Of a stretch of DNA of 64,000 nucleotides, positions 2,556 through 49,254 are shown in pieces (position 1 is the first letter of the stretch; every line of letters starts with the position of its first letter). The notes beneath the pieces were generated by a model, which was not told the DNA's origin, did no database searches, and was given only the letters and a program-made list of their open reading frames with translations. This stretch comes from Ophelia neglecta (taxonomy: Eukaryota): the NCBI GenBank assembly GCA_965285935.1, contig OZ260662.1, positions 80,290,001-80,354,000 on the forward strand. The letters are read 5' to 3'. Both the position numbers and the translations under genes were made by a program.

Positions 2556-3059
2556 TGTGGCTTGCTTTTGTATGCACAATTTATTCTGGGTGGCCAGAGT
2601 GAAAGCAGCACCTTTGTTGTTCCAGTTTTTGTGGCAGGTATAAAATAAACTTTATAAAGCACTTTTCCAAATAATTGTGACATTTCAAATAATTTTATAA
2701 CCCTGCGCTAAAGGATGCCCTATACCAACACAATATCATAGGCCAGGCCAATAACAACCTTTACAAAAGCTGTCATAAGGTGTAATTGCCAGACTCATGT
2801 AAAGCCTAATTTAGGGCCATGCAAGGCACTTCATAAACATTAAACCGAACTTTGCAGGCTCTTCATAAAATGGTTACTTTTCACAATCTCCTAGGTATGG
2901 CACTTTGCAAGTGTTTGTGAACCCTCCACCTTGGAGCTTCTGAAGTCCTAAGAAGGACGTTAACCTGACTACAAAGAGAAAGCCCTGCTAAACAATACAC
3001 CAAAACACTCCTGTTTGCCCAGCACTCTGGCACATCAATACTAACGCAAATTTATAGGA

Positions 3060-3400
3060 GACGATTTCCGCTCTACATGCTCCTTAGTTCCTGCATGGTT
3101 GTGAGTATCCCATAATTCCTATTAGCCCGTCACTTCTGCATGTTGACACACGGGCGGCGGCGGCAGCCATGTTCCAAAGAACAGGAAATGTAACACGGTG
3201 CGATTTAATCACCCGCTATTTGTTCTTCATTGGCCATAGCCTGCGGTGAAACAAGAGGCGCGCCATTGATGGGATTGTTAGGTTGTTGGAGGCTCTCACT
3301 CACCGGCCCATTTCTGCCGGTATATCCGATCAGGAATGCTGGCAGAAAATCAACCGCCCTCAAAGCAGCCAGAGGGTATTGATTGGGAAATGAGGTTGGT
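3060..3400. promoter_or_regulatory. Intronic CpG island, promoter-like
   Basis: GGC repeats, YY1-like AACATGGCTGCC (minus), ETS CAGGAAAT, CCAAT boxes, GGCGCGCC; strong minus-strand donor CCG|gtgagt at 3303. Confidence 0.55.
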
Positions 3401-5010
3401 CCTCCTGATCTGTTAATAAAATCTCCTCATGGCAGACTTGAACAACCTTAGATAAGAATAAACTTTGCTTAACCATAGAATTACTTTAGCCTGCTCATGC
3501 TGATTTGGGCTGAGTGATCTGAAGATGATTTTAAACTTATTCTGTGCTGGAGATTGGCAGAAAGCTCCCATAAAGCAGTTTAGAGCAGTGCCTATGGGAA
3601 CCAACAAGTCAGGCACACATGCCTCAATGGTAGTTGTGCATGCATGAGGTCATGTAATGGCTGCCATTGATATTTTCATGGCCCCTCTTCTCATGATGAT
3701 GAAGTTCAAAGCTAAATTATAGTCTTGCCAATGACCACTAAGGAGGAATTGCCACAATGGGGGCTCATTACGAATTCCACTCAGAGTGTTCAGGTGGGAA
3801 ATTAAGGCTGATTTTATGTCATACTTTGGAGGGCATGATTTCTCTTTATAGTCCCTAGTGCAAGAGAACATTGCATATTTTCTCACACATATTGCGATAT
3901 TGTTTGCCTTACTTTCTTTTATGATTGGCAAAATCCAAATTATTATTATAATACATAAACTTAACTGGTCTCATTATTTTATGAAAGGTAATTGAAGCTA
4001 TCAGCAGAATAGAAGATGACCATTAGTCTTGCCCATTCTACTAGTTTCTACTTCCTGAGTAACCTTTCAGTCTTTATTGCTGTGTGTCTGCTATATTCTG
4101 ATCAATGAGGGCAATCACCGCCAGTACAAAGAGCCCATGTCAGCACAAACTGTTTGAAATACCGGAAAAGTGATAAAGTCTCAGGAATCTATGCCAGATA
4201 AAGGCAGTGTCGGTTCTTAATTTACATTTATCAACTCATCTCCAAAAAAATATTAGCATTCATTAAATGATCAAGTGAGAAAATTTAATAGCTAGGTGAA
4301 GAATTAATACTTGGAAAGAGCCAAGTTGATTGGCTCTAGTATCCAATCTGGCCATCTCAATAACCTTGCTGATTTGAATGGCAGTAGGTTTTGTTCTGTG
4401 CAGTATTACAGACAAACAGCAAGTCATGAGGATGAAAGCTACACTGTAACTGAAGCCCAGTCTATTGATAGAACAACAATAACTGAGCTATCTCTTACAC
4501 ACAGTGGAGGTTCTGGCTGTTATTTTATGCTCCACAGACTGGGTACACCATCTCAAGAGTGGAAGATCACTTACAAAGATCACACATAGTGTTGGCCATA
4601 TAGGAACATATTCTGTACAACTCCAACTGAGTAATATAATAGCCATACTCCTTACATCCATAGCATATCCCAAATACCACATACACTAAAGTGGACTAAA
4701 TATGATATCATATATGGGTAAACAGTCTGACATCACAGTATTTCATCTGCATGATGGAACACAAAAAGTATAATATTCACCCCTTGAACCCATCATTTAG
4801 ACATCAGTCAATATACCAGAAGTAACCATAAAAACTTAAAATCTTAAAGCCCTGCTTTGCAAAAATCACTTCATAATTATCACCCTTAAAACATATTCCA
4901 ATTTGACTTTTTGTTGTGTTTTAAATGAAAAAAAAGATGGAAAGTGCCTTATTATTTATTTCCAGTTATGAGCTAGTCATTACAGAAGTTGCCCATGGTG
5001 GGAGACTTAC

Positions 5011-8100: not shown

Positions 8101-11100
8101 GCAGGGCAACAATAAAACCCCACGCCACGGTTTGAGAGTTTAAAAGGCTTTGACAGCTCCTTTCAGGACAACATCAAAATTTGGTGCATGTTCACAGTAT
8201 TAAATAGTTCTTATCAATGATAATTACCACCTGTGTATTGGAGAAAACTGAAGACTGATTGCAGGGGTCTTATTGATAAGAATGATGATTATTTTGATGT
8301 GGCTGGGTAGCAGGTAAGGAAAAGTTGTGTATCAGAGATCGAGGTCTAAAAGAAAACCAGTCTATTCAAATTAGACTGTGGCAGTTGACTGGATGAGCAT
8401 TAAGGAGGTCATAGAGCCTGGGGGGGGGGGGGGGGGTCAGTCAAGGCACTGCGTAGAAGTGAATTATATTGATAAAACATGTGCATATGCACTAGTCAGT
8501 TTCTTGGTTGATTAATGACAAAATATTTATTAGTTTGAATAAGGAGTCACCAATAATGTTATATAAATATAAATACAAAAACAATACATTGCCCTCACTT
8601 GGCTGATTCCTGAATTTTATTAATTGACTAGTGGCTACTTACATCCATGAAACTCACGATATTCAGCCGAGGGAGGTCTTGGAGTAGCTCGAGCGTTTCT
8701 GCGGAAAACGTTAGTGCGGCGGTGGCGCCGGTGTGGACGTGTGTTTGCCGAGGCAGGAGTCTTTTTCCAGAAGTAGTAGTATTCTACCAGCTGACCCTGT
8801 AAAGTACAAAACACCCTGTCAAATTTCATTTCCCATATTCCCAATAACAACAAACATCGACCCAGAGCATTAGAATTTAGATTGAAAACCGAGTAGAAAA
8901 ACAGCAAGAGGAACAAGACACATGCAAAGGTTATAAAGGATAGCATTAAGGAAAGTACTACAAAGTCATGATGAGTTACGATTTGGCAGCCAGAAGCTTC
9001 TGGGTGACTAATGTTTTAATGAAACAATGTTGTTGCCATGACAACCAGCCCAAGCCAGACTGTGAGGAGTGCTATGGTGTACACCAGGGAAGAGATTGAG
9101 GCACAGTTCTACAGAGCAGATAAGACAGCCACTGTTATCACTGGCCTGCTGCAAATTTCAGGGTTGTCAGTCTTTAGATATTTGATAGAGCTGACTCCTG
9201 TACCATAACAAGCAATAGCTGAGAAAACCCATAACAATTGTCAGTCAAAAACACTGAGTTCTGGTGAATCAGGATATGAAATCTTGTGATTTCTCCTGAA
9301 TTCTTACATTATCAAGGGTAATCTCATTACCATATCTATTGAGCTCTTTAGCTGGCCTAAGTTAATTATTTAGGTTAAGCTGATGCTGCAGGCAGGTTGA
9401 GAAGAGATAACCTGCCAGTAAGCTAACCTATTCACCAAGCTTATAACACTGTAAAGCCCCAGTTAGACAGCTATCTCCAATGCCAGAGTTTTACAGAGTT
9501 GTCACTTGAAACTGAGCTCAGGATTATGTATCTGAGGCAGGCATACCATATGACACTTTCATCAGCACAACTCTTCAAAGAAGGGCTGACTCCACTGCCC
9601 AGATAATAAAACTACAGTTGCAGTGAAAACAACTCTACATTCCTAGATACCAATCCAGAATGCATCAAGATGTCTGCCAACCAAACGTGTTGTTATGAGC
9701 TGGAGAACAATCAGACCTGATGTTAACTCACTACAAGTCAGCCAGGAGTTTGGCCAGTCAATATAACCTAAAGGCTGTAATCGGAATATTATCACCATGG
9801 TTATGCCAAGTATGCAAAGTGTTCTCTGACAATTAACTCCTTACTAATTGTCCAAGTTGCTAATCAATTAAACCATGCAAATGAATGTTAACTGATGGCT
9901 TGTTAATGGGTTGTTTGATATGCCTGACCAAGAGGCTTAGACTTTTTGAAAATAGTGTAATTGTATTACTCAAATAAATGAAGAAAGACCTTTAAAAATA
10001 TCAGGTGCCTTTAAACCACTGATAAGGAAGCCATGAATATAATAATTTTGTCACTTTTACATTAACATTAAATCAAAAGGATTTTTATTTAGCAGATTAT
10101 GTTCACAGAGGAAATAAGTTCTTTGTGTAGATAATGAGAAATTAACTATATAAGGTTTGCCTAATAGGTTGGGATGATAAACTGTCATTATATAGTCAAC
10201 AAACATTGTGAGGTAAATTGAAAATAACGATCGCATTATGCCCATCATCAAATGGTGGTAATGCCCATCATCACTGAGAAAAATATCATAAAATTCCAAT
10301 ATGCCGGCCCATTATGCTGTGTGGACAATATCATGGTTTTGCAAGTTGTGTGCTAAATTAGATATTGCCTCAATAAAGCTCTTTGTGTCATGAACAACAC
10401 CAGCATACAACACTTAGATCTTCAGTGGTGTCTCATGAAATTCAACTTTCCCAATGGGATGACTTCTTGTGAATAGTTTAATCGTCACAATTTGGCAGCA
10501 AGTTGCAAGCACTAAAGCTTCATGTAAGCCTTGAAGATGACTGGCAATTGACCATTTCCCTGGACAAAGTCAGGGTCTTAGTAACATTTGGCCTTTGAAT
10601 GATTACTGTAGATAACAATTTTTCATGAGGCTCTCATCATTCATAGACATGCAGGGTGAAGTATGGGGATGTATATAAATGAGAGTTATCACTTATTCAC
10701 AATCCACCACACAAAGACAAATGAAAACGAGGTAAATCCCAGAAAGGCAATGTTTCACTTGTCCTTGTAAGGTCACTTTTGTGTGTTCCTCATTCTTTAA
10801 GAAATGTTGAAAGATAGAAACAACATGTACCTGACTCAGTGAATATTGTTCACCTGTAAAAGCTTTTCCATTATGCTTAAGTTTAAACAAATTTGAAACT
10901 GGCAGTGAAATATAAAGTGTCTTGTATGCTGTGCTGTGAACCGCACACCTGGACTCTCAATCCTCCACTATCCTGGTAACAATGGCCTCCTATAGCCAAA
11001 ACTGGGGACAAGAGAGGTTTTAAAAACCACCAGAACACTCAAGGGTTAACTCTATCCAGGCCTACCACATGTGTATAACATGGAAACCATATCGGGAGTG

Positions 11101-14100: not shown

Positions 14101-17100
14101 GTAAATTAGAATACACTGGGTGAGGAGGATCACCTTCAGGTTCACTAAGTTTTCTGGTTCAAAAACATTGTTTTCTCTCTGAACCAAGGAGCTCATTATG
14201 TTAATTTACAGTCAGTATGCTAATCAAAACCTATTCAGTAGAAAAACTGCTGAGGTTCAAATAACAGCTTAGTCAAGTGACACAAATATTTTAAATGAAT
14301 TGTCAGTATGCCCTGCAGTGTAAACTTGGTCCATCTCCAATTAATAATGAAAAAAATTCAATATTTTGAGAAGGGATCCCCCTGAGGTTATGGCCTACAA
14401 AGGATAATGACAATATTTTGGTGAGTGTCAGGTGGCTGTATTGTTATATCAGTTACACGGTTACACGCTGCATGCTGGCTGAGCAGGAGTGGGATTGATC
14501 CCTTGGTGGAAGTAGGCTGGACTACACTACTTTCTCTTTAGCTGCAGGCCTGGCCACAGCAGCGAACAGGGCAGAGTATATTCAAGATGGCCGCTTTGTG
14601 TAGCCAGTTGGCAAGTAGGCGAGAAGGAGGAAGCCGGGAGTGAAGTGAATTGAGTGGGGAGTTGTGGCAGTGCGCTCCTCGCGCCCGCCCGTGGTGAAGG
14701 GCCTTCCACCGACAGCCAGGTGGGCCCGGCAGCGGGCCCACTGCCGCACACACATATGCACCCACATACTCTGTGTTGTTTTCCCCGCTCTGATGAGCCA
14801 AGAGTACTGTCACTCCTAATCTAATCACGTTAGCACCGATTGCTTGTATTGACAGTGATCAAGTGCTGCAAATAAGCCAACTAATTGTTAGTGAATAAGC
14901 ATGGACATTACCCACAATGCCTGACCAGCTGTCAACCCTGCCCATTGGCACTTCATGCGGGCTAGAAACAAACCACATAAGTGACTCATCATAATTATGC
15001 ATGCTTAAACCATCACTTTATATTCCGTCACTGACAAGATATAGCCAAACAAGACAAAAGTGCAAACTATCTGCCTATAATACAAGCAAGTTTGCCATTT
15101 CAGTTTAAATCAATTGGTAACAAATTCAGTGCTGAACAATCCATTTTACAACACTAATTCATCGTTGTACTGAAAAAGTGTCTGACAATGTACAAAATCA
15201 CCTTGGTTCAATTCCTCATATCACTGGCATTCCAGCCTATTATTTACTTGGCGGAACATACAACGTTCTGTATGTGCTACACCAAACACCTGCTGAATAT
15301 CATAGCAATGAGGGCCCTTCTTAAGTTGTTCACATCAAACAAAGACAGCTTTCAGGTGATAATGTAAAATCAATACATGCATCTAGGCTTACCACTACAG
15401 TCAGAAAAACTTAAAAGTTCAAGACTACACAAATTGTAAAGATGAATAAATATGCGCCAAAAGATGCACATCAACAATTTTCTCAATACAAGAGGGTTTG
15501 CATAAGCCAAGTTTTCCAGTATTCATAGACATGAAGTTCAACACCTTCCTATTATGAATATTTAACACGTTAGCTCTCAAATTGTCAAATCACACTGAGC
15601 AAATCAAGAGTGATTGATGTACATTTTCCAAAGTTAATAAAAGAAGAATAACAATTAAAGGTGTCAAAGATATATCAAGCTCTTTAAACTTGAGATTTCT
15701 TCAATAATTCATGCAGTCATGTACATAACAAGAAAAAACATCTCCAATGAAAGCTTGAGCTTAACTAGAACCAGTTTGATACACTCCTATCTCAAGATGA
15801 AACTTTCAGATCGTGTTGAAACTCAGTCAGAAGCATACCTAAGTCTCACAGAGGCTTCTCAAGGAGTTGAAACAGCCTAATTTGTTCTTGTTTTTATGAT
15901 TGTTAATCAATCGACTATGACTTGAAGTGTTCTCGTTCGGGGCAGTCAGATAACCCATGGAGACATTAAGGCCGTTCAGGTTCTCAGCATTCCATTAATA
16001 ATACACTCAGAGAATATACAACAGCCCTTCAAAGCTCACCACTGACTATTGACGGGCAATCAGCCTGATCAAATCAAGTCAGTGTGCAAAACAATAGCAG
16101 CCGCCTGCAGCCATTCTACCTACTTAGTGTTGCCACAAAATCTACTATATCTCACCAGTTTTGTCATTTCCCTGGTAATGGAGCTTCTGGCAAATAATGA
16201 TACAAAACTACATTTCCCACAATCACTCCCTATATGTAATGAAGATAATGTAGTGATTTATACTGCACATTTGCAAGTCAATTTCCAAAAACAATACGTC
16301 ATGGGATGTATATCTGGCCAGTTATTTACAACCCTATCTTTGGAAGGGACTGGTTAATGGGCTAGGCTTTTGCCATGTACATTATAAACAGAGTACATGT
16401 GAATAGGCAACAACTCTTCAGGCATGCCAATGGTGGGTGTTGAGGGTGTATCGGTTGACTGACTGTGCCCAATTTACCTGGTTGTACAGAGAGAGAGTGT
16501 TTGCCCCACACCAGGTACAAGCCAGCACCCCTTTGAAACCCTACACTGCTAACCCCAGACGCACACAGGGAGGTCACCAGCTTGGTTCTAATTTGTACTC
16601 CGACATTACAACCTTTTGGGCCAGCTCTGCGTGACTTGCCCAAGTAATCACTCTACTTCACCTCCATCACAAAGGACTTCCCCCCCAGGCGATTGAAAAA
16701 GAAGATCGGAAGGAGTGTTTCACTCTGTCTGCAAGTGGGCATACAGACAAAGCATCGGCTATGGATTCAATAAAGAATGCAGAGTTTTTGTTAACTGGCT
16801 GCCAGTTCTACTGTGCCTAACATTAGAAACCCTACTGATCACAATAGGAGATAGGAAAGCAGCAGGCAGGCAAATTGTCTGACCACGATATATGGCCAAT
16901 ATGGACCTCTGTAACTTAATTTGTTGGATAAAATGAACATCTTCTTTTCAAACAAGGCATTCTGCACTAATAAGGCAATATTAGGAAGCATAGGGGTGAA
17001 GATGATGATGCACTGAACATCATTTCACCACTCCTATTTTATCCTGGGCTGTACAGGATGTTATTTCTATCCTTAGACACTTCTATTATACAGGCTACAA

Positions 17101-20100
17101 AATGGTATCCACTTAAAGCACAAATGATTGACATAACATCTGCTCTAAGGGCTTGGCAAAGCAATCTGTTAGACCTTAAAAATATATATGAATATAAAGA
17201 AAGGCAGAAAGTCATATTTGCTCCGAGTGAAATGGAGAAAAAGAAGAGAAGAAAGTGCTGGCACCTTGTGGGTCAGCCCGGCCAAATGATAAGACAATGA
17301 ATGTGGGGAGGTTTGATAAACTTCAAAATGTATCTTCTCAGTGTATTGTGACATTACTGCCCTAATCAGCTGCTATATTCAATATCAAGCCATATACCCT
17401 GAGTATGGGTTAACACATATCCATTATTAATGTCTCCCATTATACAAGTTAATTGAGTAGTTTGTATAGATTTCATCACCAGCAAGCATACTACATGTAT
17501 ATATAATGGTGGTCACAGAGCACTTTATCAATCATTTATCCAATTTCATTACAAAGACACAAGAGGACTTTGTGGCAATTGATCTACACCAGCTCTGTTG
17601 GCAGGCTGGCATCATTTTAGCGGCTGAGCATCTGACTCCAGTCAGGTACTGTTTGGTGAACTGCCATGATCAGGGCGCCTCTTGTCTGGGGAGGAGGCTG
17701 GCTCACCAAATAAATATCTGGCTCCTTTCCTAGCAAGCATACGGGTGTTAGTGTGGGCAGTTAGGGTCACAATTATCTGGCTGCTCAGCCATTGCCATGG
17801 TGCTTTATGGGGTTATGGGTCATCAGAGGGCAGTAGTGAGGGCACCCCACTGACAAATGGGACATTATTAATTAATGCATTATGTATTTAGAGGGGGTCA
17901 CCAGTGCTGGGCTTTATGTGTATGGTTTCAAAATGGTCGTTTGTTGCCAATTGAGGGTTGCTGGAGTTGAAGTATTGGTCATAACTCCTCGGCTACAAAT
18001 CATACCAACACACAAAGCTCCACTTCGGAGAATTATGGTGCTTTTTGTAACATGCTTTATTTCTTTCCTCCTAAAAGTCTTTCAATCCATTCCCGAAATG
18101 GGGATTTTATGCAGAACTGTTTGAAATCAACTAGGTTATTCTGTCCAAATTACCAGCCAATGAATGGCTAAAATGTGCGGTTCAGGAGGCATGGCTGCCA
18201 TTAGTGGATAATCAACAGCAAGCAGTGGGGATATAGCAGATAACTAGAGGTGACACCTCCATTTCCCTTCTTCACAAAATGAAGCATAAAACATTTAATG
18301 TGCGAGCAGCATGCGTTTACCAGGTGAGCAGTTTTCAGAGATGGACTCGCATCATGGTAATCCCTTGTACTCACTACTTCTTTTCTACTGCAGACATCCT
18401 TTAGCAAGTTGCATTAAACTTGGCATATTACAGGGAAGTAAGGCTAAAACACTTTCTTCCTAATATTTTTATACTAGGACTGATTATGGTGTAGTTACCC
18501 AAGAGGGTATCAGAGAAGATGTTTCTGACAATTAAAACAACTCCTCTGTATGGCTGTCAATGATGAGCGGATATGATGACTCCCAGCAGTAATCTTTTAA
18601 TTAACACTCTAAGTCTGAGACACTACACAGAAACACTTTTATTTATCCTAAAGAGGCCAAACTAAGTCAATAGAAATTTTGCATTGTAGGAGTACAAAGT
18701 TTGAATTATTATAAGTAATATATTACATTAAAGGTGAATTGAAAAAGTAATGATTATAAACAGACTGAGTTTCGTCTTAAGTAGTGAATGGTGGAAGAAC
18801 ATGGCAAATTCATTATTATTTCAAACAGGCCACACTGGTAAGCCAGGTTATGGGTGTTTTCAATGAATATTGGCAACACGTACGTGCTGTAATTCTGCTG
18901 AAAATATCCTGGTAATGCCGCTGCGCACATTTAATAATCACACAGAGGCCCCCTGTGACATCAAATCGCTCCACCATGCAAGAGTTAACTGGCAGCGCCC
19001 ACCACTCACAGTGCTGTGCCAAATAATTCATGTGGCGCGGCTGTCACGTCGCCAAATCTGGCCATTACTGTGAAAACTCCATCTAATCCGAGTAGGGAGA
19101 GTTTACCATGTCAGCGGCGATCCCCTCAGCGCTCGCTGACAATGAGCTGTGCAATCTTTTTCAGTGGCGGGTCGAGTTATTGACGCATCAATCAGGGTAG
19201 GCAGGGTTGATCGGAGGAGATCGGGCCGCGCAGTGAACACTATCAGCAGGCTGCAGATCACCAACAGAATTCTCTACTGCAACCGGATGAAAAGACCAGA
19301 CATCGCAGAAATATGAAGTGCGCTCTTTGTGTGCAGTGACAGTTGTCTCACAGCAACAAGAGGAGAATCGATGAAGGAATCGCTGATGGAGATGGAAGGG
19401 GCAGAAGGCGAAGAGAATCAAAGGAGAGGGATGAGAGGAATGTGATTACCAGAAGCCAGTAACAAGATGGCTATTTATAAGGATATGAGCACACAAGAAG
19501 GAGAAATCACTGACAGAGGACAGGAATTGGGTTTTGGCTATACACAGGAGTGTAGATCACACATTCACACCAATTATAAATATGTACTCTATGCTCCATC
19601 AACCACTGTGCCTAAAAGCAGTGGTGTAAAAACACAATGAAGTAGGAATGCTGGGTATTGCTACAATCTTTGAACCCAGTTTATCAAAGATATTTAGGAA
19701 ACAGGGGCATTTACACACAAATACAAATGAGTCAAAACCAAATTATACTTACAGTTTGCTTGTTAGGTAGCAGTTCTTTTCTGATTCTAAAAAAATTCTT
19801 CCCATATTGTCTTAACCCTTTGACAAACTTTTTCTACAAAGAAGAAACATTTACATGATAATAATATTGAATAAGTTTCTAAATGGCCACAAATTGAGTG
19901 ACCAAACAGTATTACAGTTTAAATAAAAAGTAAATATTGTCCTTAGTTGGGAATTTCAAATAAATATTTCACCTAGTATGTATGGTCTCTCTTAAACTTC
20001 CTTTGCAAAGAAATTAACAAAATTTACATGAAGTTTTACCTAAAACTGTGATTGAAATAAGCATGATGTATTCATGTGCTTTATTTCCACACCAAGGGCT

Positions 20101-23100
20101 TATTTTTACAAATGAAAGCAGCACAAAACTGCTATTTCATCTTATACATGGAAACATCACTCTCAGGGGGTGGTAATATACAGACCATGAATAATGCTAT
20201 TCATTGCTGTGTCACACCAAGGTTATTCACCTAGGAAGAACACCAAAACTTGGCTGTACAAGTAAGATCCCTGCAGTCTACCACCCATCACCAAGCTTAG
20301 GTGAGACTGGACTGGTTAATACCAACATGAAAGCTACAAATGACGGTGTATGTTTAACAGACACCCTCTAGGTAAATAACCCTAGTTGAAGCACACTATG
20401 CCTTTCCAGTACTATTCATTGCACTGAAATCCTACCCTTTTCAAGAGAACATGTTGTTGACATGTCATTGCACAGCAAATGTATTGAAATCTCACGCTTG
20501 TATGGAAAGGCTCTCAACTAGGACCAAGTAGGGGATTGTAGCTTGATGAATAAATAAACAAATAATAGATTTCAATAAACCCATCTAAAGGCCACATACA
20601 AGGTAGAAGTAGACGTTTTGTTGGGAATTACTTAAGCTTTTGGACTTTATCGGTATTTAGGGTATGATTATATGGCCACATAGGCTCAAAGTGTAAATAA
20701 CTAGGGGCTAATTACTACATTTACCAAAGTCAAAACCCAAAAAAGCTTTTAATACTGACTTGGCTACTTTAAGTGGCTTTGTTCTCCGACACTGGGTGAG
20801 ACCGGGTGTGAAATAGGCTTGCAGTGAATGGGTCAATTTGGCGTGAAAGTTTTCGATTGTGCATGCCTGATCTTTTAATATCAGCAGCTTGACCCTAATT
20901 CAAAGTGGATTGGGAACCTCCCCAATGCCTTAATGGGAATAATATGCTGTGAAGGATAGGGGATTGTTCCCTGGCTGGTTCTGAACATGAGCTGAATACT
21001 TCACCATCTGTGTCAGGCCAATCTGGCTTAACCCACTCATTTCAATCTCTTAATACCCTTCACTTTCCAGGCCAGAAGACTGAGAAACACCAAACAAACT
21101 GACTTTCAGATTCTCAATCCAATTTATAATACTTCCATTTCTCATCTATCTTCAAAGAGGTAATACAAGCTGGGGTGATACAGCAATAATTGAAGGGTCA
21201 GTGAACTGATTGTAAAGAAACTGCATATGATAATAAAGAAATACACCAGGAGTTGCTTAAGGGCAGGTTAGATTACAGAGCAGACACATTTTCCTTTAAT
21301 GGCACATGTTTCTTTACAATGGGATAGTTTTGTACTTCGACTGTGTATGTGTTGACAGGGAATGTTATTTTAGGACAAGGCTTTTTTCTTAAGACTAAAA
21401 TGGCCTCCAAGTAGTATAGATTGCCTACTTAACAATCCATCTTGTCTAAGAGTAATGACATGGAATGTCTAGTAGAGTAAATACTTACAGCATCTTCTTC
21501 TGACCACCTTTTATCTATGGTTTTGGGGTTGATAGTCTTGACAAGAGACTGGAGAGACTCCCCTGTGTCATACTGATGTTTGTGAAGCTTAAAGAAAAAT
21601 AATGAGATAATAATTTTAAAAAATAAATATGGTGACCTTAATCATATGTGTATAATGAACTTTCATTTCAATAATAATCCACTCGACTTTTAAAAGACAA
21701 AGTATATTTTTTAGATTTGTTTGTTTGTGAATTTGCTATCAATGTCAATTTACTATTCAAGCCACATAGTTCGAAAAAATTGTACCAAGAGCAGCACTTC
21801 AATTAAAAAGATGAAAAACAGCAGAGCATGCCCTGGGTGTTTACCATGTCTAGAGCTGCTATGGTGGTCTCATCCATGGAGGCTGCAGTACAGCCATCCT
21901 CAGGTGTGCCCCCATCACACATCCCAACAAAGGCTGCCATACTCCTGTGAAAATGAAGAGCAAGTTCTAAACGGGTCAGTATGGTAAAACTATTGCTTTC
22001 TATTGGTGCACATAACCTGTATTTACCACAGCAATGTGTTGAACCTGGCTACAATTAGCAGTATTTAACTATGTTTATGTCATGTGCAAGGGGCATAATA
22101 ACCAATACATATTACATTGTGTCATTTCAGAGTTAGCGGCCCATCAGACAGCTGGACTGTCATACATTAAACCCTGTTCACATACTGCTATAATAGAGCA
22201 GTCATGCCACACTCTTCAGCAGACTGCTACATTAGCATAACAGTCACGCAAGAAAAAATGTTGCACCCAATTTATGATGACAAGAAAATTACAGTGCTTG
22301 TGGGTATAGATGGCCTAAAGTAAGCACAAGGCAAACATCAATATATACATACTAGGTTCACCCAATCTCTAAATTATACCTCATGGTCACCAATTACAAT
22401 GGTCCACTGTCTCAGACAGTATCATAACCCTCGTGTATCTTATTAGACAATGTTCAAAGCACACTATTCTGTAATTGTACATGCTTGGTAATACATGCGC
22501 AGCATAAATTAATATAGAGAGCCTGCATTTTCTAATAACAACTTGTGATGCTTGGAATATGAAAAGCAAATGTCAGTAGACAATTAATATGGCCTAGATG
22601 TGACAGAAACAATGTCTAATATCATCTGACCTGGCAGCCCTGAGGAACATGATGAGGTCTCCATCACCAACAGCCGATGGCTTCCACACCAGACTCTCCA
22701 AAGGCTCACACTTCTCGGGCATATCATTGGGATCCACATTGGCTTTGTACTCGGGAAGGCGAGCCTGTGTAAACACATAAACATCATTATATAATACACA
22801 CCTGAAATCTCAACCAACATTATTTCTTCAAAATCATCCATAAACATAATTTACTGATGAACAGCAAGTGGTCATTGTAAAAATCATCATATGGGGAAAC
22901 ATACGCTAGACATTTTTTTCTAATTAATAGATTGTTAATGTTTTACTATATTCATTACACTGAAGATTGTGCCACAATCCATTTTACTTTGACCTGTGAC
23001 ATTTGTCAGGTCCAGTTGTCTGATGGAGGAGAATTGTTTGGGAGACAGCAGGTCCTTTTGTCAGGTAACCAGGTGTCACCACTGAAGACACCATCAGAGA

Positions 23101-38100: not shown

Positions 38101-41100
38101 CAGCAATGACATTGCTGGCACTAGCCCCTGGTGCATGGCAGGCCAATGAATATTTCATCACTACACAGACAATTGCTCGCTCTGGTAAGGTAATTTCAGA
38201 CTAACATTATTTGGTTGATAACAGTACAATGGGATGTCAAACTACCTTGGAATGCTGTACTTCAAGACATGTTGACTTACACATTCACAACCAGGAATCA
38301 TAGAGCAATCTGTTAATTGCATTAGCAACTTTGGACTTCCCAATCAGCCACCAACTCATTATCAGCTCATTAACAAACACCACACAGTCTATAGAAACAA
38401 ATCTGCCAGTCACAATACCTAGTGTGTTTGATTAATCAGACAATGTGTAAGCAGTCCCTGGCATAAGCAATCATTGATATTTGTTTAATGTACTTGGTGT
38501 GTTGAACAAAAGGCCCTAGTAAACAAATAATTCATTCTAGTAAACAGCCTGATCACAGTGAGGCTAAGTAAGCTGATGACTTACCATCAAACTTATGTAG
38601 CTTTTATAAAACCATTATGAGTTTTAGTGGCACACCTGTATAGTTCACTGAATAATTGTTTATACATATAATTCCAGGTAGTCCAATCCACAGGCCTTTG
38701 AATGTCAATTTGAATTCACCTCCACCCATTATTCCTCAATGTACTGAACACATTCCCTGGTTGTGTGGATTGTATGCAAAGCAAATAAAGGGTATGTGCC
38801 ATATTGCCAATGAGATACAGACAAGGTATCCACCCCATTCTAATTTCCACTTCGACTAATAGTGTATCCAGTTGACATTATCTTTGTATTGTTTTCACTG
38901 CTTTTCATGCATAAAGAACAGGTTTTGCCATAACATTTGAAAGAGTTTCATGCTTGTGGGCTATTTATTATCTGTTTTAATCATACCAGTGTGGGAAGCA
39001 TGATGGGGACAAAATTGTTATAGTTGACGCTTGACTTGTGTGCTTTTCTCTATGCGTATATTCATTTCCTCTTTTCATAATACTACATGAACATCACATT
39101 ACTTCCATTACCAATTTATACCTTTGTCATCACTGACAATTTGCTAACAAGTAAAAAATACTGGGAGAAACCAGAAAACCAATTTATGAATTGCTCACTT
39201 GACAAATACTCCTAGGTTTTGAGGCAATATTCTGGACAGTGTGAATGCAAAACAAATCCCTGTAGCCTAAAGTGCTGGTGAATTTTGGCAATTGGCAATC
39301 TTCGTCTGACCTTTTCTTTCTACATACAAACCCAGTCTGGTCTCGTCTGGGATGTGATGCACATTCCAACCAGTAATATAGTGAATGAATGTACCTGTGA
39401 TATCCCCTTCTACACTCAGAGCTTTGAGTATACACACTCATCCTATCAATTCTAAAACGATCTTATACAGACGGTTATAGAGAGGCTACCAGTTTGCAAG
39501 GCAGATGTCACAGATGCCACACCACATCAATAAAATAACCATATTAGACGAATATCTATGCAGTAAGTTTGCTCTCATGTGACTTTTTGTCATTTTTCTC
39601 TTCTCCGGAAAGGCCTATGAACAATGTGATAGCACACTACAGGGCATTAAAGCAAAATCAATACACCGGTTGAACATGATCCAATCTACTGAGCTATGCT
39701 CTCAATAGGCACCAATGTGAAATCCCACTTAGCTTTTTAAATGAGTTTAGGTCAATACCTAAATGAACCACAAGTGACAGACAGTCATGCTACCATAGGA
39801 AACAAAGCAGCCAAATTTAAGGAAATTACGAAGCCTATTAGCACAGGTTTTGCGTTAAAAGTTGACGAGTTGGCAAGATCCGGTGAACACAAAATGGCCC
39901 CTATCATTATCTATGGCCAGCCTGTCTCTCCTAGACTCACTCAAGCTTGAGTGTGATTGAAGAGCCTTGGGTCCCACATTCAAATTAGCAATGCTCTCTT
40001 GCTGTTAGCTTTACATTCAAATCACAGTGCTGCTGGCAATAGACTTCAGGTGCTATGGGGAGGAAATATATCTTTAGAAGGACATAGATGCTGCCTTGAA
40101 GTTAAGTAAATCAGGATGTAAGGCTGACACCCCAACCGGCGTTTTGGAAGGCAGTGGCAAGCAGCCACCATCTGTATCTGTACTGGTCTATCACTGTATT
40201 GACAGGCAGTGCACAAAGCAATAGCCTTACTTGCCTACCACCGACTACCCTCCGCTAGGGATAACAATTTCAACATAAACTCACCTCTCAATAGATTTCA
40301 CTTAGCCTGACCAAATCCATGGCCAAGACACACCCTTCCGACTACCATACATTGTGATGGGAAAGTTCAGAAACTCTTTGATTGTCAAAAGTCAGCCATA
40401 GAATTTCCAACAAAAATCCTACAAGAAGGTTCATATTCAAGCTACCGCCATGATGCCACAAACCAGGCCATGTGTCCGTTTGTAACAAGTGCTTTCATTG
40501 GTCCACTGGTAAGGGTTTTGCACCATTGGACCAATGATAAGCCACATAACACTTAATACCACTTCACAGCGCAGACTTCACTAGACTATGTTTACAATAG
40601 GGATCTATATAAATCAATGTGCTGATAAAACCGTATACTCCACTCTACACATGTTTGCCTAAACATCTTACAATGGCACATGATTAATTCCCCAAGCTGG
40701 TTTTCCAACATACTAGGAGAGAAGGTAACATGACCTTCCACTGGCATTCTATCCAACAAAAAACCACCAACATTTATATTGTACCAAACTTGTCCGCCTA
40801 CAGTGCTAAGAAAGACTAGCAATGCTAAATGGTGATTCACCTGTGAATATTACCTCAAACTGGAGACAACTCTGAAATTTCCATGTAAAAGTTATGATGT
40901 TTGTAGATAAAACTGAAGGAGTGAAATAAACAATTTTCACTCCTTCAGAAACCTACAAAAAGAAGTTGAGATGTACAATGAAAAACAGGCCTGCAACTGA
41001 TTAACCAGTTATAAGTTTCCTGCTGTGATTGAATAGAAGACATACTATAGCCCATGGTTGACTGTGCAAAGAAGATGTAATGGGTCAAATGATCAGCACA

Positions 41101-44100
41101 ATGTGCAAGTGTAGGCTTGTTACTTGACTCCTCGTTTTTTATCTCTCTAAAATCCCATTTTGGTCATATCAGGCCATTCAGTGATAGTTTAGAGTAACAT
41201 CTACTGCACATACCAGCAAATAAACATCTACATGCACACCTTATACCCAAGGAGGTGTTTTCTTATGAAACATCCTAGCTATTAAGTGATCCTTAAAAAC
41301 AAAAAAACCACGGTAGGGTAACCGACATACTGAGATATCACCCAATACAGTAGTACACCAGGAATCAAGATGGACTCAATGTATGATGGAAGGCTAGGAC
41401 AAATACAAACAAAAGCAACCAAATTTTAGTAGCTGGTATTTGTTATTGTTAGCCATCTTTGTATACAGAGTTTCTTATGAACCAGGTTATATTGCACACT
41501 ACTCGACAAGGAATCATGAACACAAACAAAATTGAAGACCTTGTTTGGGACAAATACCAATAAAAATCACAGGCCATTGAAAGGATATTGAACCATACAT
41601 TGACCCACACAATGCAACATGCCATAGGTGGGAAATGAATTGCCTTGCTGCTCAACAACGAGACTGTAAGGCTTCAGCTCCGCCAGAGCAAAATCTTCAT
41701 GCCACTTAGGTAGCAATATCTTTGTCTGATGCAAAGTCTGGAATAGGCCCTGCAGGTCAATTAGGGGAACATGGAGCTAGGATCAATAGTCTGAGCAGTG
41801 GCAGGCAGAGATGGCTTGGTGGGTTTGTATAACATCACCAACAGAGGGCACCAGCACTGCAGGCTGAGGGCTGAGGGAGCAGTACTTTAGAATACTATGT
41901 ACTATATAGGAAAATACCATGTGTATGTATTAGATCCAAGTCAAAACTATGTGGTCCACTTTAAATTGAGTTTTTCCATATTGAATAAAAAATTCAGTAA
42001 ACTAATTAGTACATGGGTTGATTCGAGTGTACAATTAATAGGCCTCTGTTATTCCACAATAACTGAACTGAGGATAAAATCACTAAATGAGGATGTTAGA
42101 GTGGATATTGCCATAAGGCATTTTCAAAAGTGGAAATTTGAGATATTTTGAGCTAAACTTTAAACAAGGCAATTCCAAACCTCATGCACCCCAAAAGGGA
42201 AAGGGATATTAAGCCTTTGAGCAGGTTTAACCGATTACTGAAGTTACAAATGAAATACCACATTATATTCAATTTGAAAAACTCAGGAAATCATCTGAAC
42301 TGTGAACAAAAACTTAAAAAATGAAATTTTCATTACCACCCCATTTTTGTTTCCAGGTTTAAGCTTTCAAAAAAGTTCTAGTAGGTCTAATTTGAAGACA
42401 CAACTACAACTGCCTTTTATGGTTTTATAAATCTAGGCTATAAATTTCAAAAGCCCAGCTGTTAAAATTAAGTAGTTACACTGAGGTACGGAAATACTTT
42501 TTTTTCATCACTGTTCTTATGGAAACTAATTATATACACCTCAACCCTCAATTTTCAGCCTCCTAGCTATACAACATTCCCAAGTCGACATCCTTTTTTT
42601 GGGCCAACTAAAGTAGTATACCTGACTGAATCTCAACCATTAAGTAACGGAAATATGCAGGCCTAAAATGCATACATAATTTGCATTGTAAAAATGCTCA
42701 AAACAAAACCGATATGAATGGAAATACAAGCTGCTGAAAATGATCTCTGGGCAAAATAAATTGAACTTGAAACTCATTAATAGGAGTGGCTGGGTTAAAA
42801 GGTACAAAATTTGAAAAAAAGTAGGAAGGGGGCGGGGGGGGGGGGGGGGGGTTATAAGCAACATAACATTAAAAAAGTAGGAGTGGGTGGGTTACAGGGA
42901 ACAAGATTTTTGAGCTTGGTCTTAGTTAATATATTGTATCATTTTTCTTTTTCCTGAACTATTTAACTAGGTATTACTATTTTGTTCAAGACAAGTTCTT
43001 ATTTTTATCTTCCATAGTTATCAATTGATAAGTAAGATGGAGGGGCAGTTCTTGATTTTTCAATTGTCAAACATGTAAAATCTGAGATAAAACAAAGGAC
43101 ATACCATATTAGGCAAATACATGCATCCAATGTTCCTGACTTCTTATTTTCTCAGTCAACATTAATGCCTGAACCTAACACTTGAATAAGCTATGGCTTA
43201 CAGAGATGACTAATTATCTATCTACAAATACACATTTAAGCTATATGGCTGGTTATCCCATCTAAAACAAAAACAGATAATTTTGATATAACAAGCATAC
43301 AGCATCATGAAATGTGCAGCTTATCAACTCCATAAAATCATCATTTGTATTTGCTATATCTGTTCTGTTCTAAACCAAATACCATAATGATATATCTTTA
43401 TACTGATAATTGAGTGTAGTGAACCTACCATTTTCAATGTGCCTGTCTTGAACCAGAAGAGCATAGACACTGTCAGGAACCTCTGAAGGCCGATAGTACC
43501 ACTTGATAGTGACTAGAACATTATCACGGCGGTTCTGAAACAGAAAAACAAATCAATTTTATAATTCAACTATTCTGTTGCACATGATTCCCTGTATGTC
43601 CATCTGCATTATTATTTTCAATAGTGTACAAAATAGTGTGCCTTTACGGTGAAAAAACAGGTCACAAAATGTGTACTATCAGTCAAAAACTGTCTTTATT
43701 TTATGCTGTTTCCCAAACAATCAATGTGTGCAACAATCAAGTGCACCTGAATTTTGACTGGTATTTTTGTTTGTATTACCATAGGAACAAACAGTTATCT
43801 CTGAATTTTAATTCTAATTAAACGCCAAAGTGTTCTATAAAACACCAAGTTCCTCCATTTTGTTTGTGTTAAGCTGTTTTATTTGCTTCACAATACAGGT
43901 CACAATTTTCAACTAGGCCGCTTCAGAATTCCCCATGTCATGTTCCTTCAATCCAATTCGAAAATAGCAGTTCTCAGCACCACAGGTACATTTTAAGGGC
44001 TAACAACATCCTTTTCAGAAAAAATGCTCCCAAATCTGATCTGATCCTGTTGGTGCTAAAATGTTCCTGAGACAACAGGCCATCTTTTTGTCTGCAACCA

Positions 44101-47100
44101 GCAGTCTCTAGAAGATCCGAAAACTTTGGAAATTAGCCAATATTTTAAACAGAACTAGAATTCTGAAATTTTGCACATGTCATCCCTGGTGCCAAACATC
44201 ACACAATGCTAAATTTCAGAATTTTTAGTGCACAGGCACCAGCTACAGAGCCTCTGATAAATAGCACTTAAAAGTCAGTATAGTCAGTTCAATCTGCTGC
44301 CATATCACGAAAGGGTCGCACAAGAAATTTGCTTAAAAAACATGGATAAACCCTTGGTGCTATGCCGAATTTTGTCCACTTGGCCCTATGATGCTTAGTT
44401 TTTAAGATTTGGCCCAATTTAAGTTTAAGAAATTACTTGCCCTAGGCTTCGTTATTTTTCATGGAACTGGGGTGGGGGTGTTTTCAAGTCATCATTTTAT
44501 TGACCTTGCAGAGCAGGAAATAGATGTAAATAATCTTTGTTCATATATCTTTAATCCAAAGGATCAAGAGCATGTGAGATGACTGGGAAATAGTAGATTG
44601 ATTCTAGATGCATTGTATCATGTGTATTGATATCAAGATATTAATTATCTTCATCTGTGGTGATTGTCAACATCTACATAGTGGTATACATGTGACTTGT
44701 CAGCACTTCAAACTAGACAATCAATGCACAACTGAATGTACACTCCAGTTGACCTGGGTCATGCTAGGCTAAAGGTATAAGTCAAAAGGGTGACAAGCAA
44801 AGCTTGCCTACATCATAATTTAGTGGATCTTAAATTGGGCATATAAATAAGCTTCCTACACCAATTATTGATTACTGCTCACAGATCAGAGTCATGCTAT
44901 CCTCATTTCCCCCTAAACAAATATCAAGACAGGCTGTGCTAACATTTTTTCCAACTGGATAACATGCAGACCTGATGGTTAGTCATCAATATCAGTATTA
45001 CATTAGAACAGCTACAATCAAACGATGCTTAATTACACTGGCTGTTATAACTATTAATAGGTTAGATTGCTGAAAACCAGATTAGCAGTAAATCTTGGGT
45101 GAGAGCAAGTTCAATCATGTTGATGCACTGTCCTAAGCTACCAAGAGCCCACTACTCCTAGCCAAATGGATAGCCCCACCAGATAAAATGGATAGTCTCT
45201 CAGCATTAACCTTCAGAAATGTGTGACCCACTACAGGCAATGTAGACCTTACTGTCATGAACGCATGCCATTCACCATTGAACGATGCATAAAACGATGA
45301 CATTTATTTCCACAAAAGGAAGATTTACTTCAATGGGGCAGGGTTATGATTAAATTACTGCTGTGCAACACAGATATCTAGCTGGGATGTAATAACACTG
45401 GATCTGAACAAATCCAATGCCTCCAAGATCTTGCAATCATGTCTGATGGTTTTATGGGAAATATTGTTGCGCTTTCGGTTAGCTAAGGGTATTAAGCCTG
45501 TCTATATTAGCTTACCATGTGCTATGAAGCCGCAACATAGTTTATACATTTGCCATGACAAACATAATGAATGTATGATGGTAAATGGCCTCGATACACT
45601 CTATGCCTGCAGTGGGGACAAATTTCACAGACGCTGCGTATTACTTACTCATTTTTCACAAATTTGTATAACCAGAAACATATCAACCATGACAGGGTTG
45701 GAGCTAGCAATAAGCAGGGACTGCTGGCAGTCTGCATTGATAAATGATAACATCAGTGGATAAATCAACTACTAGCATGAATAACAGAGCTTGAGGCTAT
45801 ATAAAAGTAAACAACATTACCAAATATTTATATCATTTTCAACATACACACATGTTTCTTCCTCTGGTGCTACCTTCTTTTACCTTATTAGTAGTAATAA
45901 ATTTAAAATATTGTTAGATAATACATCATCATTTATATACAACAAATAAGCCTTTATTTGGGGGAGTAATTGGGTTTGTTCGTATTATCAATTATTTAGT
46001 CTGATACAAATAACTATAAAGCACATTATTATTCAGTCTGCTGCCAGTATGGGCAACAGTGGGACTGCAATTCAAAAACCAATTTATGATAATTATTAAG
46101 TTGCATGATCAATTCACTGTGGCCATAAATTACAGCCAGATAAAAATCAGTTCCAACTTTATTAGGAAATTTGGTTGAAAGTCATAAATCAATTGTGATT
46201 GTAAAAGCAATGTTTAAGGCTGTAAGAGCATTGCAACAAGACACCAGCTTAAAATATCTATCGATGAAAACACTCAGGCTCAATAGGTTAATTGGTAGGT
46301 GACATGTTGACTAGATTCTTTATCCTGTGAATGTTGCAGTCTATCAAGTCAATTGCCAGTCAGGCAGAATACAATTTGTTGACATTGGCTGCCCTTCAGT
46401 ATGTAAATTATCCTGTTCTGTTCACATATTGATCTGTAAGTTCTACTGGAGGCAGTTCACAATGGTAAACACAGCTAAAGCCAGCAGATTGTAATAACCT
46501 AATGCCAGAATGGGACATATTCCACACTGTTGAAGAAATGTGGAAGGTTAAGCATATTAATACATGAGCTGGTGTGCAAATATTGGCACTTTTGAATAAA
46601 TTTTCATTCTTAACCAAATGATTTGTATTGCGAGGGGATGCCTAAGCCAGCACTTTGATAATATTATTACCTCTAACTGAAAACAGTGTATTTAAATTGA
46701 ACAGGCAATGCTAAATTAGAGTATACCCTTGAGAACATGTTATAGGTTAACTGTTACAGCTTGATATCACAACATGTAAGACTTCTTCAAACTTAATGGT
46801 ACAGCCTCTGACCTTTCTAACACTGTGCTGCTTAGTTTGAAGTTGGCATGTATAGAATTACTGGCAACTGCCAGGGAACACTTCTCAACTGAAAAGCAGT
46901 GATACCCTCATGTATACTAACACTAAGCTAGGATAGAAGGCTATTTCAGCTTGCACAATATTCACATGATAAACATTCTGAGTCTTGGTTTCTTAATATC
47001 ACACTTAAGATGAAGCTTGCCTGTCAGATTCAATCCAGAATTTGTCAAACTAATTTCGCTGTATCTTCCCATCCAGTACGTCTATCTAGGACAATAGTGA

Positions 47101-48765: not shown

Positions 48766-49254
48766 CTGTAACACAGCAAAACAAACATTAGTATACACAT
48801 ACCTATGCTATGAAAAGTATTGGTATGAAGAGAGAATTTCAAGTGAAGAAAGTATTATCAGTTTAAAGTAGCTACAAGTGAGTTTCCTTGATGATGTAAG
48901 ATGGCCTATGAGTCTTCGACTATTGATTACCAGTACTTACCAAATGGTTTATGTTATAAATCTTAAATTAAAACATGTTCATTTTACATGCATGTTAATG
49001 AAGTGAGTTAATAACGGATATAATAGCATTACTGAAATCATCAATATCCACTGCCTGAAACTTTCTGTGCCAGAAGCTGCAGGTTTAAACACCTCCCCTT
49101 AGGAGCTTACATGACTTATCAACACCCACTCATAAAGCAACCAGCTAGGTGTATCAAACACTAGGTTTGCTCAAATTATCAGTAATGTGCAAGTAAACTG
49201 AGGCACACCAAGCTTGCCCTATCTTGCCCATGACAGATGGGTTGTGCCCATGTC

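Follow-up and report, generated by a model that had tools for sequence, protein, structure and literature searches.

An intronic CpG island in the RERE/atrophin-2 gene of Ophelia neglecta as a candidate promoter-type element

Can an invertebrate atrophin gene produce a short protein from a promoter within one of its own introns? The question is raised by a 64-kb stretch of DNA from Ophelia neglecta (hereafter the window), in which an initial annotation proposed an internal promoter followed by a first exon with ATG as its only codon, predicting a short atrophin without the HDAC-recruiting module. Positions are those of the window and run on beyond its ends where needed; the features under discussion are collected in Table 1.

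Compared exon by exon with RERE orthologues (tblastn), the locus matches them collinearly from 48766 to about -17 kb, in the order BAH, ELM2, SANT, GATA and Atrophin-1 found in RERE, and on this sequence evidence the host gene is a RERE/atrophin-2 orthologue. The domain order was read with Pfam from the oyster orthologue, the exons within the window being too short for Pfam; none of the window's large ORFs contains a Pfam family reaching the cut-off. The transcription unit extends over ~108 kb. The SANT exon (splice sites ttgtag/ and /gtaagt) has an 81-nt counterpart in the equivalent place in oyster, Glandiceps and Lineus, and is followed by an 11-kb intron, which interrupts the SANT domain; in the oyster orthologue the SANT Pfam match covers residues 356-400, and the exon equivalent to the acceptor exon at 8796 begins at residue 391. 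The GATA finger is encoded by exons 5110-5009 and -250 to -468, and from 8796 onward no in-frame Met is reached until after this finger.

Table 1. Features of the host gene and of the candidate internal first exon (window positions)
Feature	Position	Strand	Details
RERE exon with the shared donor	21845..21970	-	Real exon, just downstream of ELM2 Pfam match; donor GACATG/gtaaac
SANT exon	19753..19833	-	81 nt, 27 codons; mid SANT domain (helices 1-2); tblastn to RERE orthologues
TATAAATA (TATA box)	19472..19479	-	274 bp after SANT exon; inside CpG-free stretch 19410-19752
GCCATCTT, YY1/PHO-like core	19464..19471	-	Directly after TATAAATA
Proposed first exon (leader + ATG), hypothesis only	19107..19445	-	339 nt, GC 0.52, 17 CpG, CpG o/e 0.79
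Intronic CpG island core	18773..19409	.	29 CpG; densest non-coding CpG cluster of the ~108-kb transcription unit
uORF 1, MSGLFIRLQ-stop	19274..19303	-	Upstream ATG at 19303
uORF 2, MRQ-stop	19177..19188	-	Upstream ATG at 19188
Candidate start and donor, GACATG/GTAAAC	19101..19112	-	Candidate ATG 19109-19107; candidate donor GT 19106-19105
Alternative donor, ACT/GTGAGT	19004..19009	-	In island, ~100 nt downstream of candidate donor; nearer consensus
Acceptor exon	8658..8796	-	Phase 0; last ~10 SANT residues (helix 3) + basic linker

The most distinctive property of the intron is its CpG content. CpG o/e is 0.20 for the whole window and 0.14-0.2 over the gene body (about -20 kb to +91 kb), where TpG/CpA are in excess, while values of 0.6-0.85 are reached beyond +124 kb; the locus thus has a mosaic CpG pattern, which we read as a signature of gene-body methylation. 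Beginning ~340 bp past the SANT exon lies a CpG island that a sliding window places at 18751-19550; its GC is 0.52 and its CpG o/e reaches 0.84, the composition of a CpG-island promoter when this is defined by a CpG o/e of at least 0.6, raised GC and a length of several hundred bp. Its density of 28-29 CpG per 640 bp compares with a gene-body mean of 5.3 (5-6 times; Poisson p < 1e-8), only 16 islands are found in 264 kb, and a CpG-free stretch of 343 bp (19410-19752) marks its edge. The canonical promoter of the gene is probably another island, at about +91.5 kb. The 661-bp island stretch has just one copy in the 762-Mb genome and carries neither direct nor inverted repeats, and an origin from a transposon or repeat was rejected on these grounds. 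A small RNA gene was likewise rejected (no Rfam match at E <= 1, no tRNA), and as for a nested coding exon, the six ORFs of the island lack any Pfam match at cut-off, the sole match being sub-threshold (E 0.03). GC skew flips sign near 19150-19250, with G in excess on the plus strand at 19300-19499; such a change of sign is typical of divergent CpG-island promoters, a rule drawn from vertebrates.

A CpG island within a CpG-depleted gene body is what would be expected of a germline-unmethylated, promoter-type element. The reading we tentatively prefer, at somewhat short of even chances, is that the region is such an island, serving as a promoter-type regulatory element in the methylated body of the RERE/atrophin-2 gene, where its composition would have been kept by freedom from methylation; both the hypomethylation and the promoter activity are deduced from base composition. 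Transcription would then be likelier to start close to the middle of the island (about 19100-19250) than from the TATA box at its margin, and the island could fire in the sense direction, in the antisense direction or in both. That there is any sense internal promoter here at all seems doubtful. If the island did fire in sense, and the transcript were joined to the exon at 8796, the product would be a RERE shortened at its N-terminus, with BAH, ELM2 and most of SANT missing. Counted against a promoter reading are the lack of cross-phylum similarity and of a conserved island, the chance-level motifs and the position of the oyster alternative exon outside any CpG island, all described below, together with the consideration that a CpG-rich patch could persist without a promoter role.

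The individual promoter motifs are where the initial annotation had put them, all on the minus strand, with the TATA box in its stated place past the SANT exon, then the YY1-like element and then an Inr-like TCACATT. Neither the TATA nor the YY1-like motif is commoner than chance predicts: the 64 kb hold 11 copies of TATAAATA over both strands (3 on the minus strand and 8 on the other) and 7 of GCCATCTT, both strands together. Over 264 kb the YY1-like motif has 19 copies, and the idea that it is enriched in islands was dropped, with 2 observed there vs ~1 expected. With its flanks TATAAATA reads TTATAAATAG, which also fits the MEF2 site consensus. The A of the Inr-like motif lies at 19443, so that the TATA box, starting at 19479, is spaced at about -36 vs the usual -31, and no DPE match at +28 was seen on reading the sequence.

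The leader, too, is as CpG-rich as had been claimed, and it contains exactly two upstream ATGs, each opening one of the two short uORFs. The candidate ATG has G at both -3 and +4, and without splicing it would open an ORF of 8 codons. The identity of the candidate donor with that of a real exon is confirmed: the 12-mer GACATGGTAAAC has just two copies on the minus strand of the 64 kb, the candidate site and the working donor of exon 21970-21845, 2.7 kb away (p roughly 3e-4 for a second copy at that distance). Similarity between the two sites ends at the 12-mer itself, and the idea that the common donor arose by exon duplication was rejected, the local alignment score being 24 vs a shuffle mean of 19.2 and maximum of 27. 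The 12-mer was also rejected as part of a dispersed repeat, since its 176 copies in the 762-Mb genome, of which many belong to two satellite arrays, compare with 144 copies of the reversed sequence taken as control. The join of 19107 to 8796 is in frame, as proposed, but any ATG/GT would be automatically in frame because the acceptor is in phase 0, and ATGGT occurs 91 times on the minus strand of the 64 kb, or about once per 800-bp island by expectation. As a donor, GTAAAC has neither G at +5 nor T at +6 and represents the weakest donor type of the host gene, whose remaining well-defined donors are GTAAGT or GTGAGT. An exon ending at the alternative GTGAGT donor (19009) would have no in-frame ATG. 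Since 19107 is the only donor in the island with an in-frame ATG, only a splice from it would keep the GATA finger; from any other donor the first in-frame Met would come after the finger.

Comparison with other species gives partial support for alternative 5' ends in this intron and none for the island as such. Two oyster (Magallana gigas) models, A0A8W8KBY2 and A0A8W8KBW3, have extra 5' exons (at 42799-42861 and about 46370-46419 of the oyster genomic sequence), which fall past the SANT exon at 39970-40050 and before the acceptor at 48994, and an assembled mollusc-like transcript (L002) has an unrelated leader of ~500 nt joined to the same acceptor. Like the candidate, these have alternative 5' exons, within the homologous intron or in its place, and use the same phase-0 acceptor, with products containing only GATA and Atrophin-1, and they may be taken as a partial precedent. 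They differ from it in that the oyster models use two extra exons, encoding 37 residues and lying outside any CpG island, while in L002 no ATG precedes the junction in frame, and the residue called as 'M' is a TTG right after a TAA; the short form is absent from the NCBI oyster models. Among ~250 retrieved RERE orthologue sequences no M-G-x-L start was found, and the short N-termini MIER, MVEFYY and MEYYY that some begin with look like artefacts of calling TTG, GTG or CTG as start (the DNA was checked for MIER). All sequences returned by the full HMMER search stayed at or below 82% identity, and the acceptor exon (46 residues), used as query in a word search for close relatives, gave no hit. 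Neither intron nor island shows sequence similarity to the oyster, Glandiceps or Lineus introns or to the L002 leader. A CpG island in the same position past the SANT exon was sought in other phyla and rejected: Glandiceps has a GAT/GAC microsatellite there, Lineus a high CpG background, and oyster lacks one. A metagenome scan with an exact 22-mer of the leader gave a single match, of those 22 letters only, to a GC-rich, bacterial-looking contig, and was put down to chance. The locus was found in three public sequence runs, all of them sets of whole-genome contigs and none of RNA, in which neither joints nor loose ends were seen.

How far, then, can the proposal be followed in its exact form, with a TATA/Inr start near 19445, a leader of 339 nt and a one-codon exon spliced to 8796, predicting a short atrophin of SANT helix 3, GATA finger and atrophin domain? 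All of its motifs are present, its ATG has G at -3 and +4 and stands in the middle of the CpG island, its donor is identical over 12 nt to a working one, it provides the sole island splice that puts a start codon in frame before the GATA finger, and other invertebrates have isoforms from the homologous intron. We nevertheless consider it very unlikely. An ATG/GT in frame is to be expected in each island by chance, and identity over the 12-mer, its consensus AA at +3/+4 aside, is about equally improbable for a working donor and for a chance site, with no duplication linking the two. The TATA box is at -36 from the Inr-like A and stands in the CpG-free stretch outside the island, the donor lacks the G at +5 and has a GTGAGT ~100 nt further on, two uORFs precede the ATG, none of the retrieved RERE sequences has an M-G-x-L start, and the island shows no conservation across phyla.

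The island itself could also have a role other than that of a sense promoter, as an enhancer, an insulator, a Polycomb/PHO-type element, or a promoter for antisense or non-coding RNA only, and no short RERE would then be made. This we regard as unlikely, if worth serious attention: two GC-rich patches in introns of the host gene (19471 and 14591) contain a YY1/PHO-like GCCATCTTG, several CpG-rich patches (19.1, 14.6 and 3.2 kb) are grouped in the part of the gene from the SANT to the GATA exons, and an antisense start would be suited by the YY1-like motif as read on the plus strand, AAGATGGC, and by the G excess on that strand. Yet the motif is not enriched in islands, elements active in the soma only would not be expected to shield CpGs over evolutionary time, and the Pfam and Rfam searches gave neither an ORF with a match at cut-off nor an RNA family on either strand of the island. 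Still less probable, to our mind, is an island with no function, a neutral CpG- and GC-rich patch left from older sequence or produced by local mutation bias, with its motifs there by chance. It would agree with the chance frequency of each motif taken singly, with the missing cross-phylum conservation and with the ease with which matches such as the bacterial 22-mer arise; against it, such a CpG density has persisted in a gene whose TpG/CpA excess speaks of long-term CpG decay, the single-copy state leaves no room for a young transposon insertion, and genomic contigs differ from the assembly at 0 positions in 18778-20024 vs 15 in 5.8 kb overall, a weak and post hoc contrast (p ~0.04).

The mammalian parallel on which the original proposal leaned holds in part. 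RERE-S (Atr2S) likewise derives from a promoter inside a gene of this family and is truncated at the N-terminus, without the HDAC-recruiting ELM2-SANT (PMC10676324). It keeps only the atrophin domain, with GATA also absent (PMC10676324), and its internal promoter accordingly lies at another position in the gene, starting downstream of the GATA exon, whereas the candidate lies upstream of the SANT helix-3 and GATA exons. The predicted product, containing the exons from 8796 on with those of the GATA finger, would therefore be more than an atrophin-1 domain freed of BAH, ELM2, SANT and GATA. Nothing shows common descent of the two promoters, and the suggestion of an ancient switch is weakened by the difference in position. 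A likeness to the island as we prefer to read it is offered by the orphan (intragenic) CpG islands of vertebrates and the unmethylated promoter regions of invertebrate mosaic methylomes, which are likewise short, GC-richer patches of preserved CpG in a CpG-depleted unit; the present one is recognized by its composition.

What is new here is the RERE/atrophin-2 host with its CpG-depleted body and, within it, a single-copy island that forms the densest non-coding CpG cluster. Alternative promoters are common, and the proposed promoter with its one-codon exon is a fairly ordinary prediction, an annotation hypothesis rather than a discovery; a firmer by-product is how clearly the locus is mosaic in its CpG content, a few intragenic islands standing out with sharp bounds. 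It is a long shot that a short atrophin is made from an unmethylated intragenic CpG-island promoter by way of an ATG-only first coding exon, keeping GATA and atrophin and losing BAH-ELM2-SANT. Were it so, the short form would have the same binding partners by virtue of its atrophin domain and would contact DNA or chromatin by way of GATA, but would not bring in HDAC1/2. It could therefore serve as a natural antagonist, or else as a co-regulator in its own right, as has been proposed for mammalian RERE-S. The split between long and short atrophins would then not be confined to vertebrates, and, taken with the oyster and transcript precedents, it would point to a recurrent and possibly old long/short atrophin switch, placed differently from the mammalian RERE-S promoter.

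The feature of this region that rises above chance is a CpG island. CpG o/e is 0.20 for the window as a whole; over the 264 kb around it (G000:C2 80.19-80.454 Mb, -100 kb to +164 kb) the body of the RERE gene (about -20 kb to about +91 kb) has values of 0.14-0.2 and a TpG/CpA excess of 1.3-1.48, and beyond +124 kb the ratio is 0.6-0.85. Gene-body methylation gives such a mosaic in invertebrates, and this sharp pattern, judged from composition, is the one that would be expected of it. Within the depleted RERE body, 18751-19550 reaches a CpG o/e of 0.84 at a GC content of 0.52. Its 28-29 CpG per 640 bp (the mean is 5.3) make it the densest non-coding CpG cluster of the transcription unit, where only the C-terminal coding exons exceed it. 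The island is single-copy in the genome, no repeats were found in it, Rfam and tRNA searches of it gave no match, and its open reading frames matched no Pfam family at its cut-off. On the simplest reading it would long have been exempt from germline methylation, as promoter-type elements typically are. Three whole-genome contig sets from one sample cross the RERE introns without joints or loose ends; they differ from the assembly at 15 positions in 5.8 kb and at none in 18778-20024, a weak hint of constraint, being post hoc and from a single sample. The likely canonical RERE promoter is an island at +91551 to +92450. The introns from the SANT to the GATA exons contain two more CpG- or GC-rich patches: one at 14400-14800, with GC up to 0.59 and a near-consensus YY1/PHO site, GCGGCCATCTTG, and one at 2851-3550, in the intron right before the second GATA exon, containing TATAAA and a GCC repeat.

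On its minus strand the window carries part of an orthologue of RERE/atrophin-2, its exons collinear in exon-by-exon tblastn with those of molluscs, a nemertean, a hemichordate and fish, at about 50-80% identity per exon to every orthologue retrieved. Splice sites were read directly from the DNA, and an additional exon probably lies upstream at 65690-65637. To judge from the orthologue matches and the mosaic CpG pattern, the genome is of invertebrate type.

Exons of the O. neglecta RERE gene and landmarks of the oyster (Magallana gigas) RERE locus, L024; negative values lie beyond the window
Feature	Position	Strand	Basis
RERE exon	48766-48695	-	tblastn
RERE exon	43543-43412	-	tblastn
RERE exon	32206-32123	-	tblastn
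RERE exon	25697-25524	-	tblastn
RERE exon	22767-22627	-	tblastn
RERE exon, donor GACATG/GTAAAC	21970-21845	-	tblastn
RERE exon	21587-21489	-	tblastn
RERE SANT exon, 81 nt	19833-19753	-	tblastn
RERE acceptor exon, phase 0	8796-8658	-	tblastn
RERE exon	5110-5009	-	tblastn
Second GATA exon	about -250 to -468	-	tblastn
Large low-complexity RERE exon	about -5.2 to -7.2 kb	-	tblastn
Atrophin-domain exons	to about -17 kb	-	tblastn
Oyster SANT exon, 81 nt	L024 39970-40050
Oyster extra 5' exons, between SANT exon and acceptor	L024 42799-42861 and about 46370-46419		Ensembl/UniProt short models
Oyster acceptor	L024 48994

The initial annotation had placed here an internal promoter with an ATG-only first exon, and the elements it had read are present on the minus strand: a TATA-like TATAAATA at 19479-19472, 274 bp past the 81-nt SANT exon, with a YY1-like GCCATCTT immediately 3' of it; an Inr-like TCACATT (A at 19443); a 339-nt leader that contains 17 CpG and just two upstream ATGs, opening MSGLFIRLQ and MRQ, each closed by a stop; and GACATG/GTAAAC (the slash marks the splice point), in which the ATG occupies 19109-19107. 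This 12-mer recurs as the donor of the exon that ends at 21845, and the minus strand has no third copy in the 64 kb. Joined to the acceptor at 8796, the 19107 ATG gives the N-terminal peptide that had been predicted. With its flanks (19471-19480) the TATA-like element reads TTATAAATAG, which we take to match the MEF2 consensus YTA(W)4TAR as well.

Motif by motif, this is little above chance. ATGGT occurs 91 times on the minus strand, so that about one would be expected per island, and an ATG followed by GT and joined to a phase-0 acceptor is always in frame. The counts of TATAAATA (11) and GCCATCTT (7) in the window are unremarkable, and in the CpG islands of the 264-kb neighbourhood the YY1-like motif shows no enrichment (two matches against about one expected). 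The coincidence of the 12-mer is rare: with 176 copies in the 762-Mb genome, the probability of finding another one as near as 2.7 kb is about 3e-4. The genome count is inflated by two tandem-repeat arrays (G000:C1:134896871-134898849 and C1:144337574-144338564), which hold dozens of copies of GACATGGTAAAC spaced about 15-30 bp apart. The coincidence hardly discriminates between the hypotheses: beyond the consensus AA at +3/+4, identity at the remaining five free positions is equally improbable for a working donor and for a chance site. GTAAAC is used once in the RERE gene, the other well-defined donors being GTAAGT or GTGAGT. No duplication connects the 19107 and 21845 sites, and that origin for the shared 12-mer was rejected. 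A 22-mer of the unspliced leader had a single, exact match among metagenome contigs, in a GC-rich, bacterial-looking one (L025, 3868-3889); the likeness is confined to the 22-mer and was dismissed as chance.

The CpGs of the island span 18773-19409, centred near 19100. No CpG at all occurs in the 343 bp between 19410 and the SANT exon, where the TATA box and the start proposed near 19445 lie. GC skew changes sign at about 19150-19250: below this stretch the minus strand is the G-rich one, above it the plus strand. Such a change is a mark of divergent starts in the CpG-island promoters of vertebrates; by that vertebrate-derived rule it is a weak hint of them here. Together, the CpG distribution and the skew favour a start near the island centre over one at the TATA box. 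A sense transcript from the centre would meet the 19107 donor and then, about 100 nt on, ACT/GTGAGT at 19009, which is closer to consensus. Only the 19107 splice supplies an in-frame ATG: exon 8796-8658, which by Pfam holds no more of the SANT domain than its final ~10 residues, and exon 5110-5009 both lack a Met codon, and the first one in frame beyond them comes past the GATA finger. A short protein retaining GATA therefore requires the 19107 ATG, and other first exons would at best yield an atrophin-only product.

With the 46-residue acceptor exon as query, a full HMMER search retrieved 120 sequences, at up to 82% identity; a word search with this exon gave no sequence of comparable length. 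The closest relative of the exon (82%) is P0002, a 473-aa JGI metatranscriptome contig. It is a spliced BAH-ELM2-SANT transcript in which the donor homologous to 8658 is read through and a short tail with a stop follows; a retained intron, or an isoform of the N-terminal part alone, may explain it. An M-G-x-L start is absent from all retrieved sequences. Two kinds of seemingly short N-terminus occur among them; MCIFQ-GEL, for example, reads as translated intron, and MVEFYY, MEYYY and MIER look like TTG, GTG or CTG starts called Met, as checked on DNA for MIER only. Three other forms make a start inside the SANT-splitting intron plausible. The oyster models P0130 and P0131 (UniProt A0A8W8KBY2, A0A8W8KBW3) take their first 37 residues from two extra exons in the intron homologous to 19752-8797; L002, an assembled mollusc-like transcript, has an unrelated leader of ~500 nt joined to the homologous acceptor, with TAA directly before its called TTG start; and at this junction the whitefish model P0082 carries a different N-terminus. 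By Pfam, these short forms keep GATA and Atrophin-1 only. The L002 junction is not that of an AG-ended retained intron. NCBI oyster isoform X3 begins immediately upstream of the ELM2 exon, and BAH is the one domain that it is missing. The precedents are real, yet the models are minor or computational; none has sequence in common with the window, and the oyster extra exon lies outside any CpG island.

Nor is the position of the island conserved. Glandiceps (L026) and Lineus (L027) have CpG clusters 350-900 bp past the 81-nt SANT exon; the first is a GAT/GAC microsatellite, the second one of ~45 'islands' in 90 kb, and the oyster has no CpG island at the corresponding position. In none of the three was any sequence alignable with that of the window. 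At L026 56980-57480 a long GTT tract precedes the microsatellite, at an offset as in the window. Lineus carries GCCATTTT and GCCATCTT (L027 44233-44240 and 44354-44361) 130 and 252 bp past its SANT exon; the offset resembles the window's (+282), but shared 8-mers are expected by chance and the likeness is marginal.

Mammalian RERE-S does come from an internal promoter, as the initial annotation had stated, but it has the atrophin-1 domain only, without BAH, ELM2, SANT or GATA (PMC10676324, citing Shen et al. 2007). Its promoter must thus lie past the GATA exons; the candidate in the window precedes the exon for SANT helix 3. Positional homology between the two is unsupported, and so is the suggested ancient switch. 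From sequence, the island is probably a methylation-free regulatory element, and the chance that it is of promoter type, on either strand, seems close to even. That it would be a sense promoter feeding exon 8796 is rather doubtful, and the exact model, in which transcription starts at the TATA box near 19445 and the ATG-only coding exon ends at 19107, is possible, though unproven and, in our view, improbable. A short atrophin would be better framed by convergence, or by long introns being put to use recurrently, than by an ancient switch, and for now the finding is an annotation hypothesis of modest interest.
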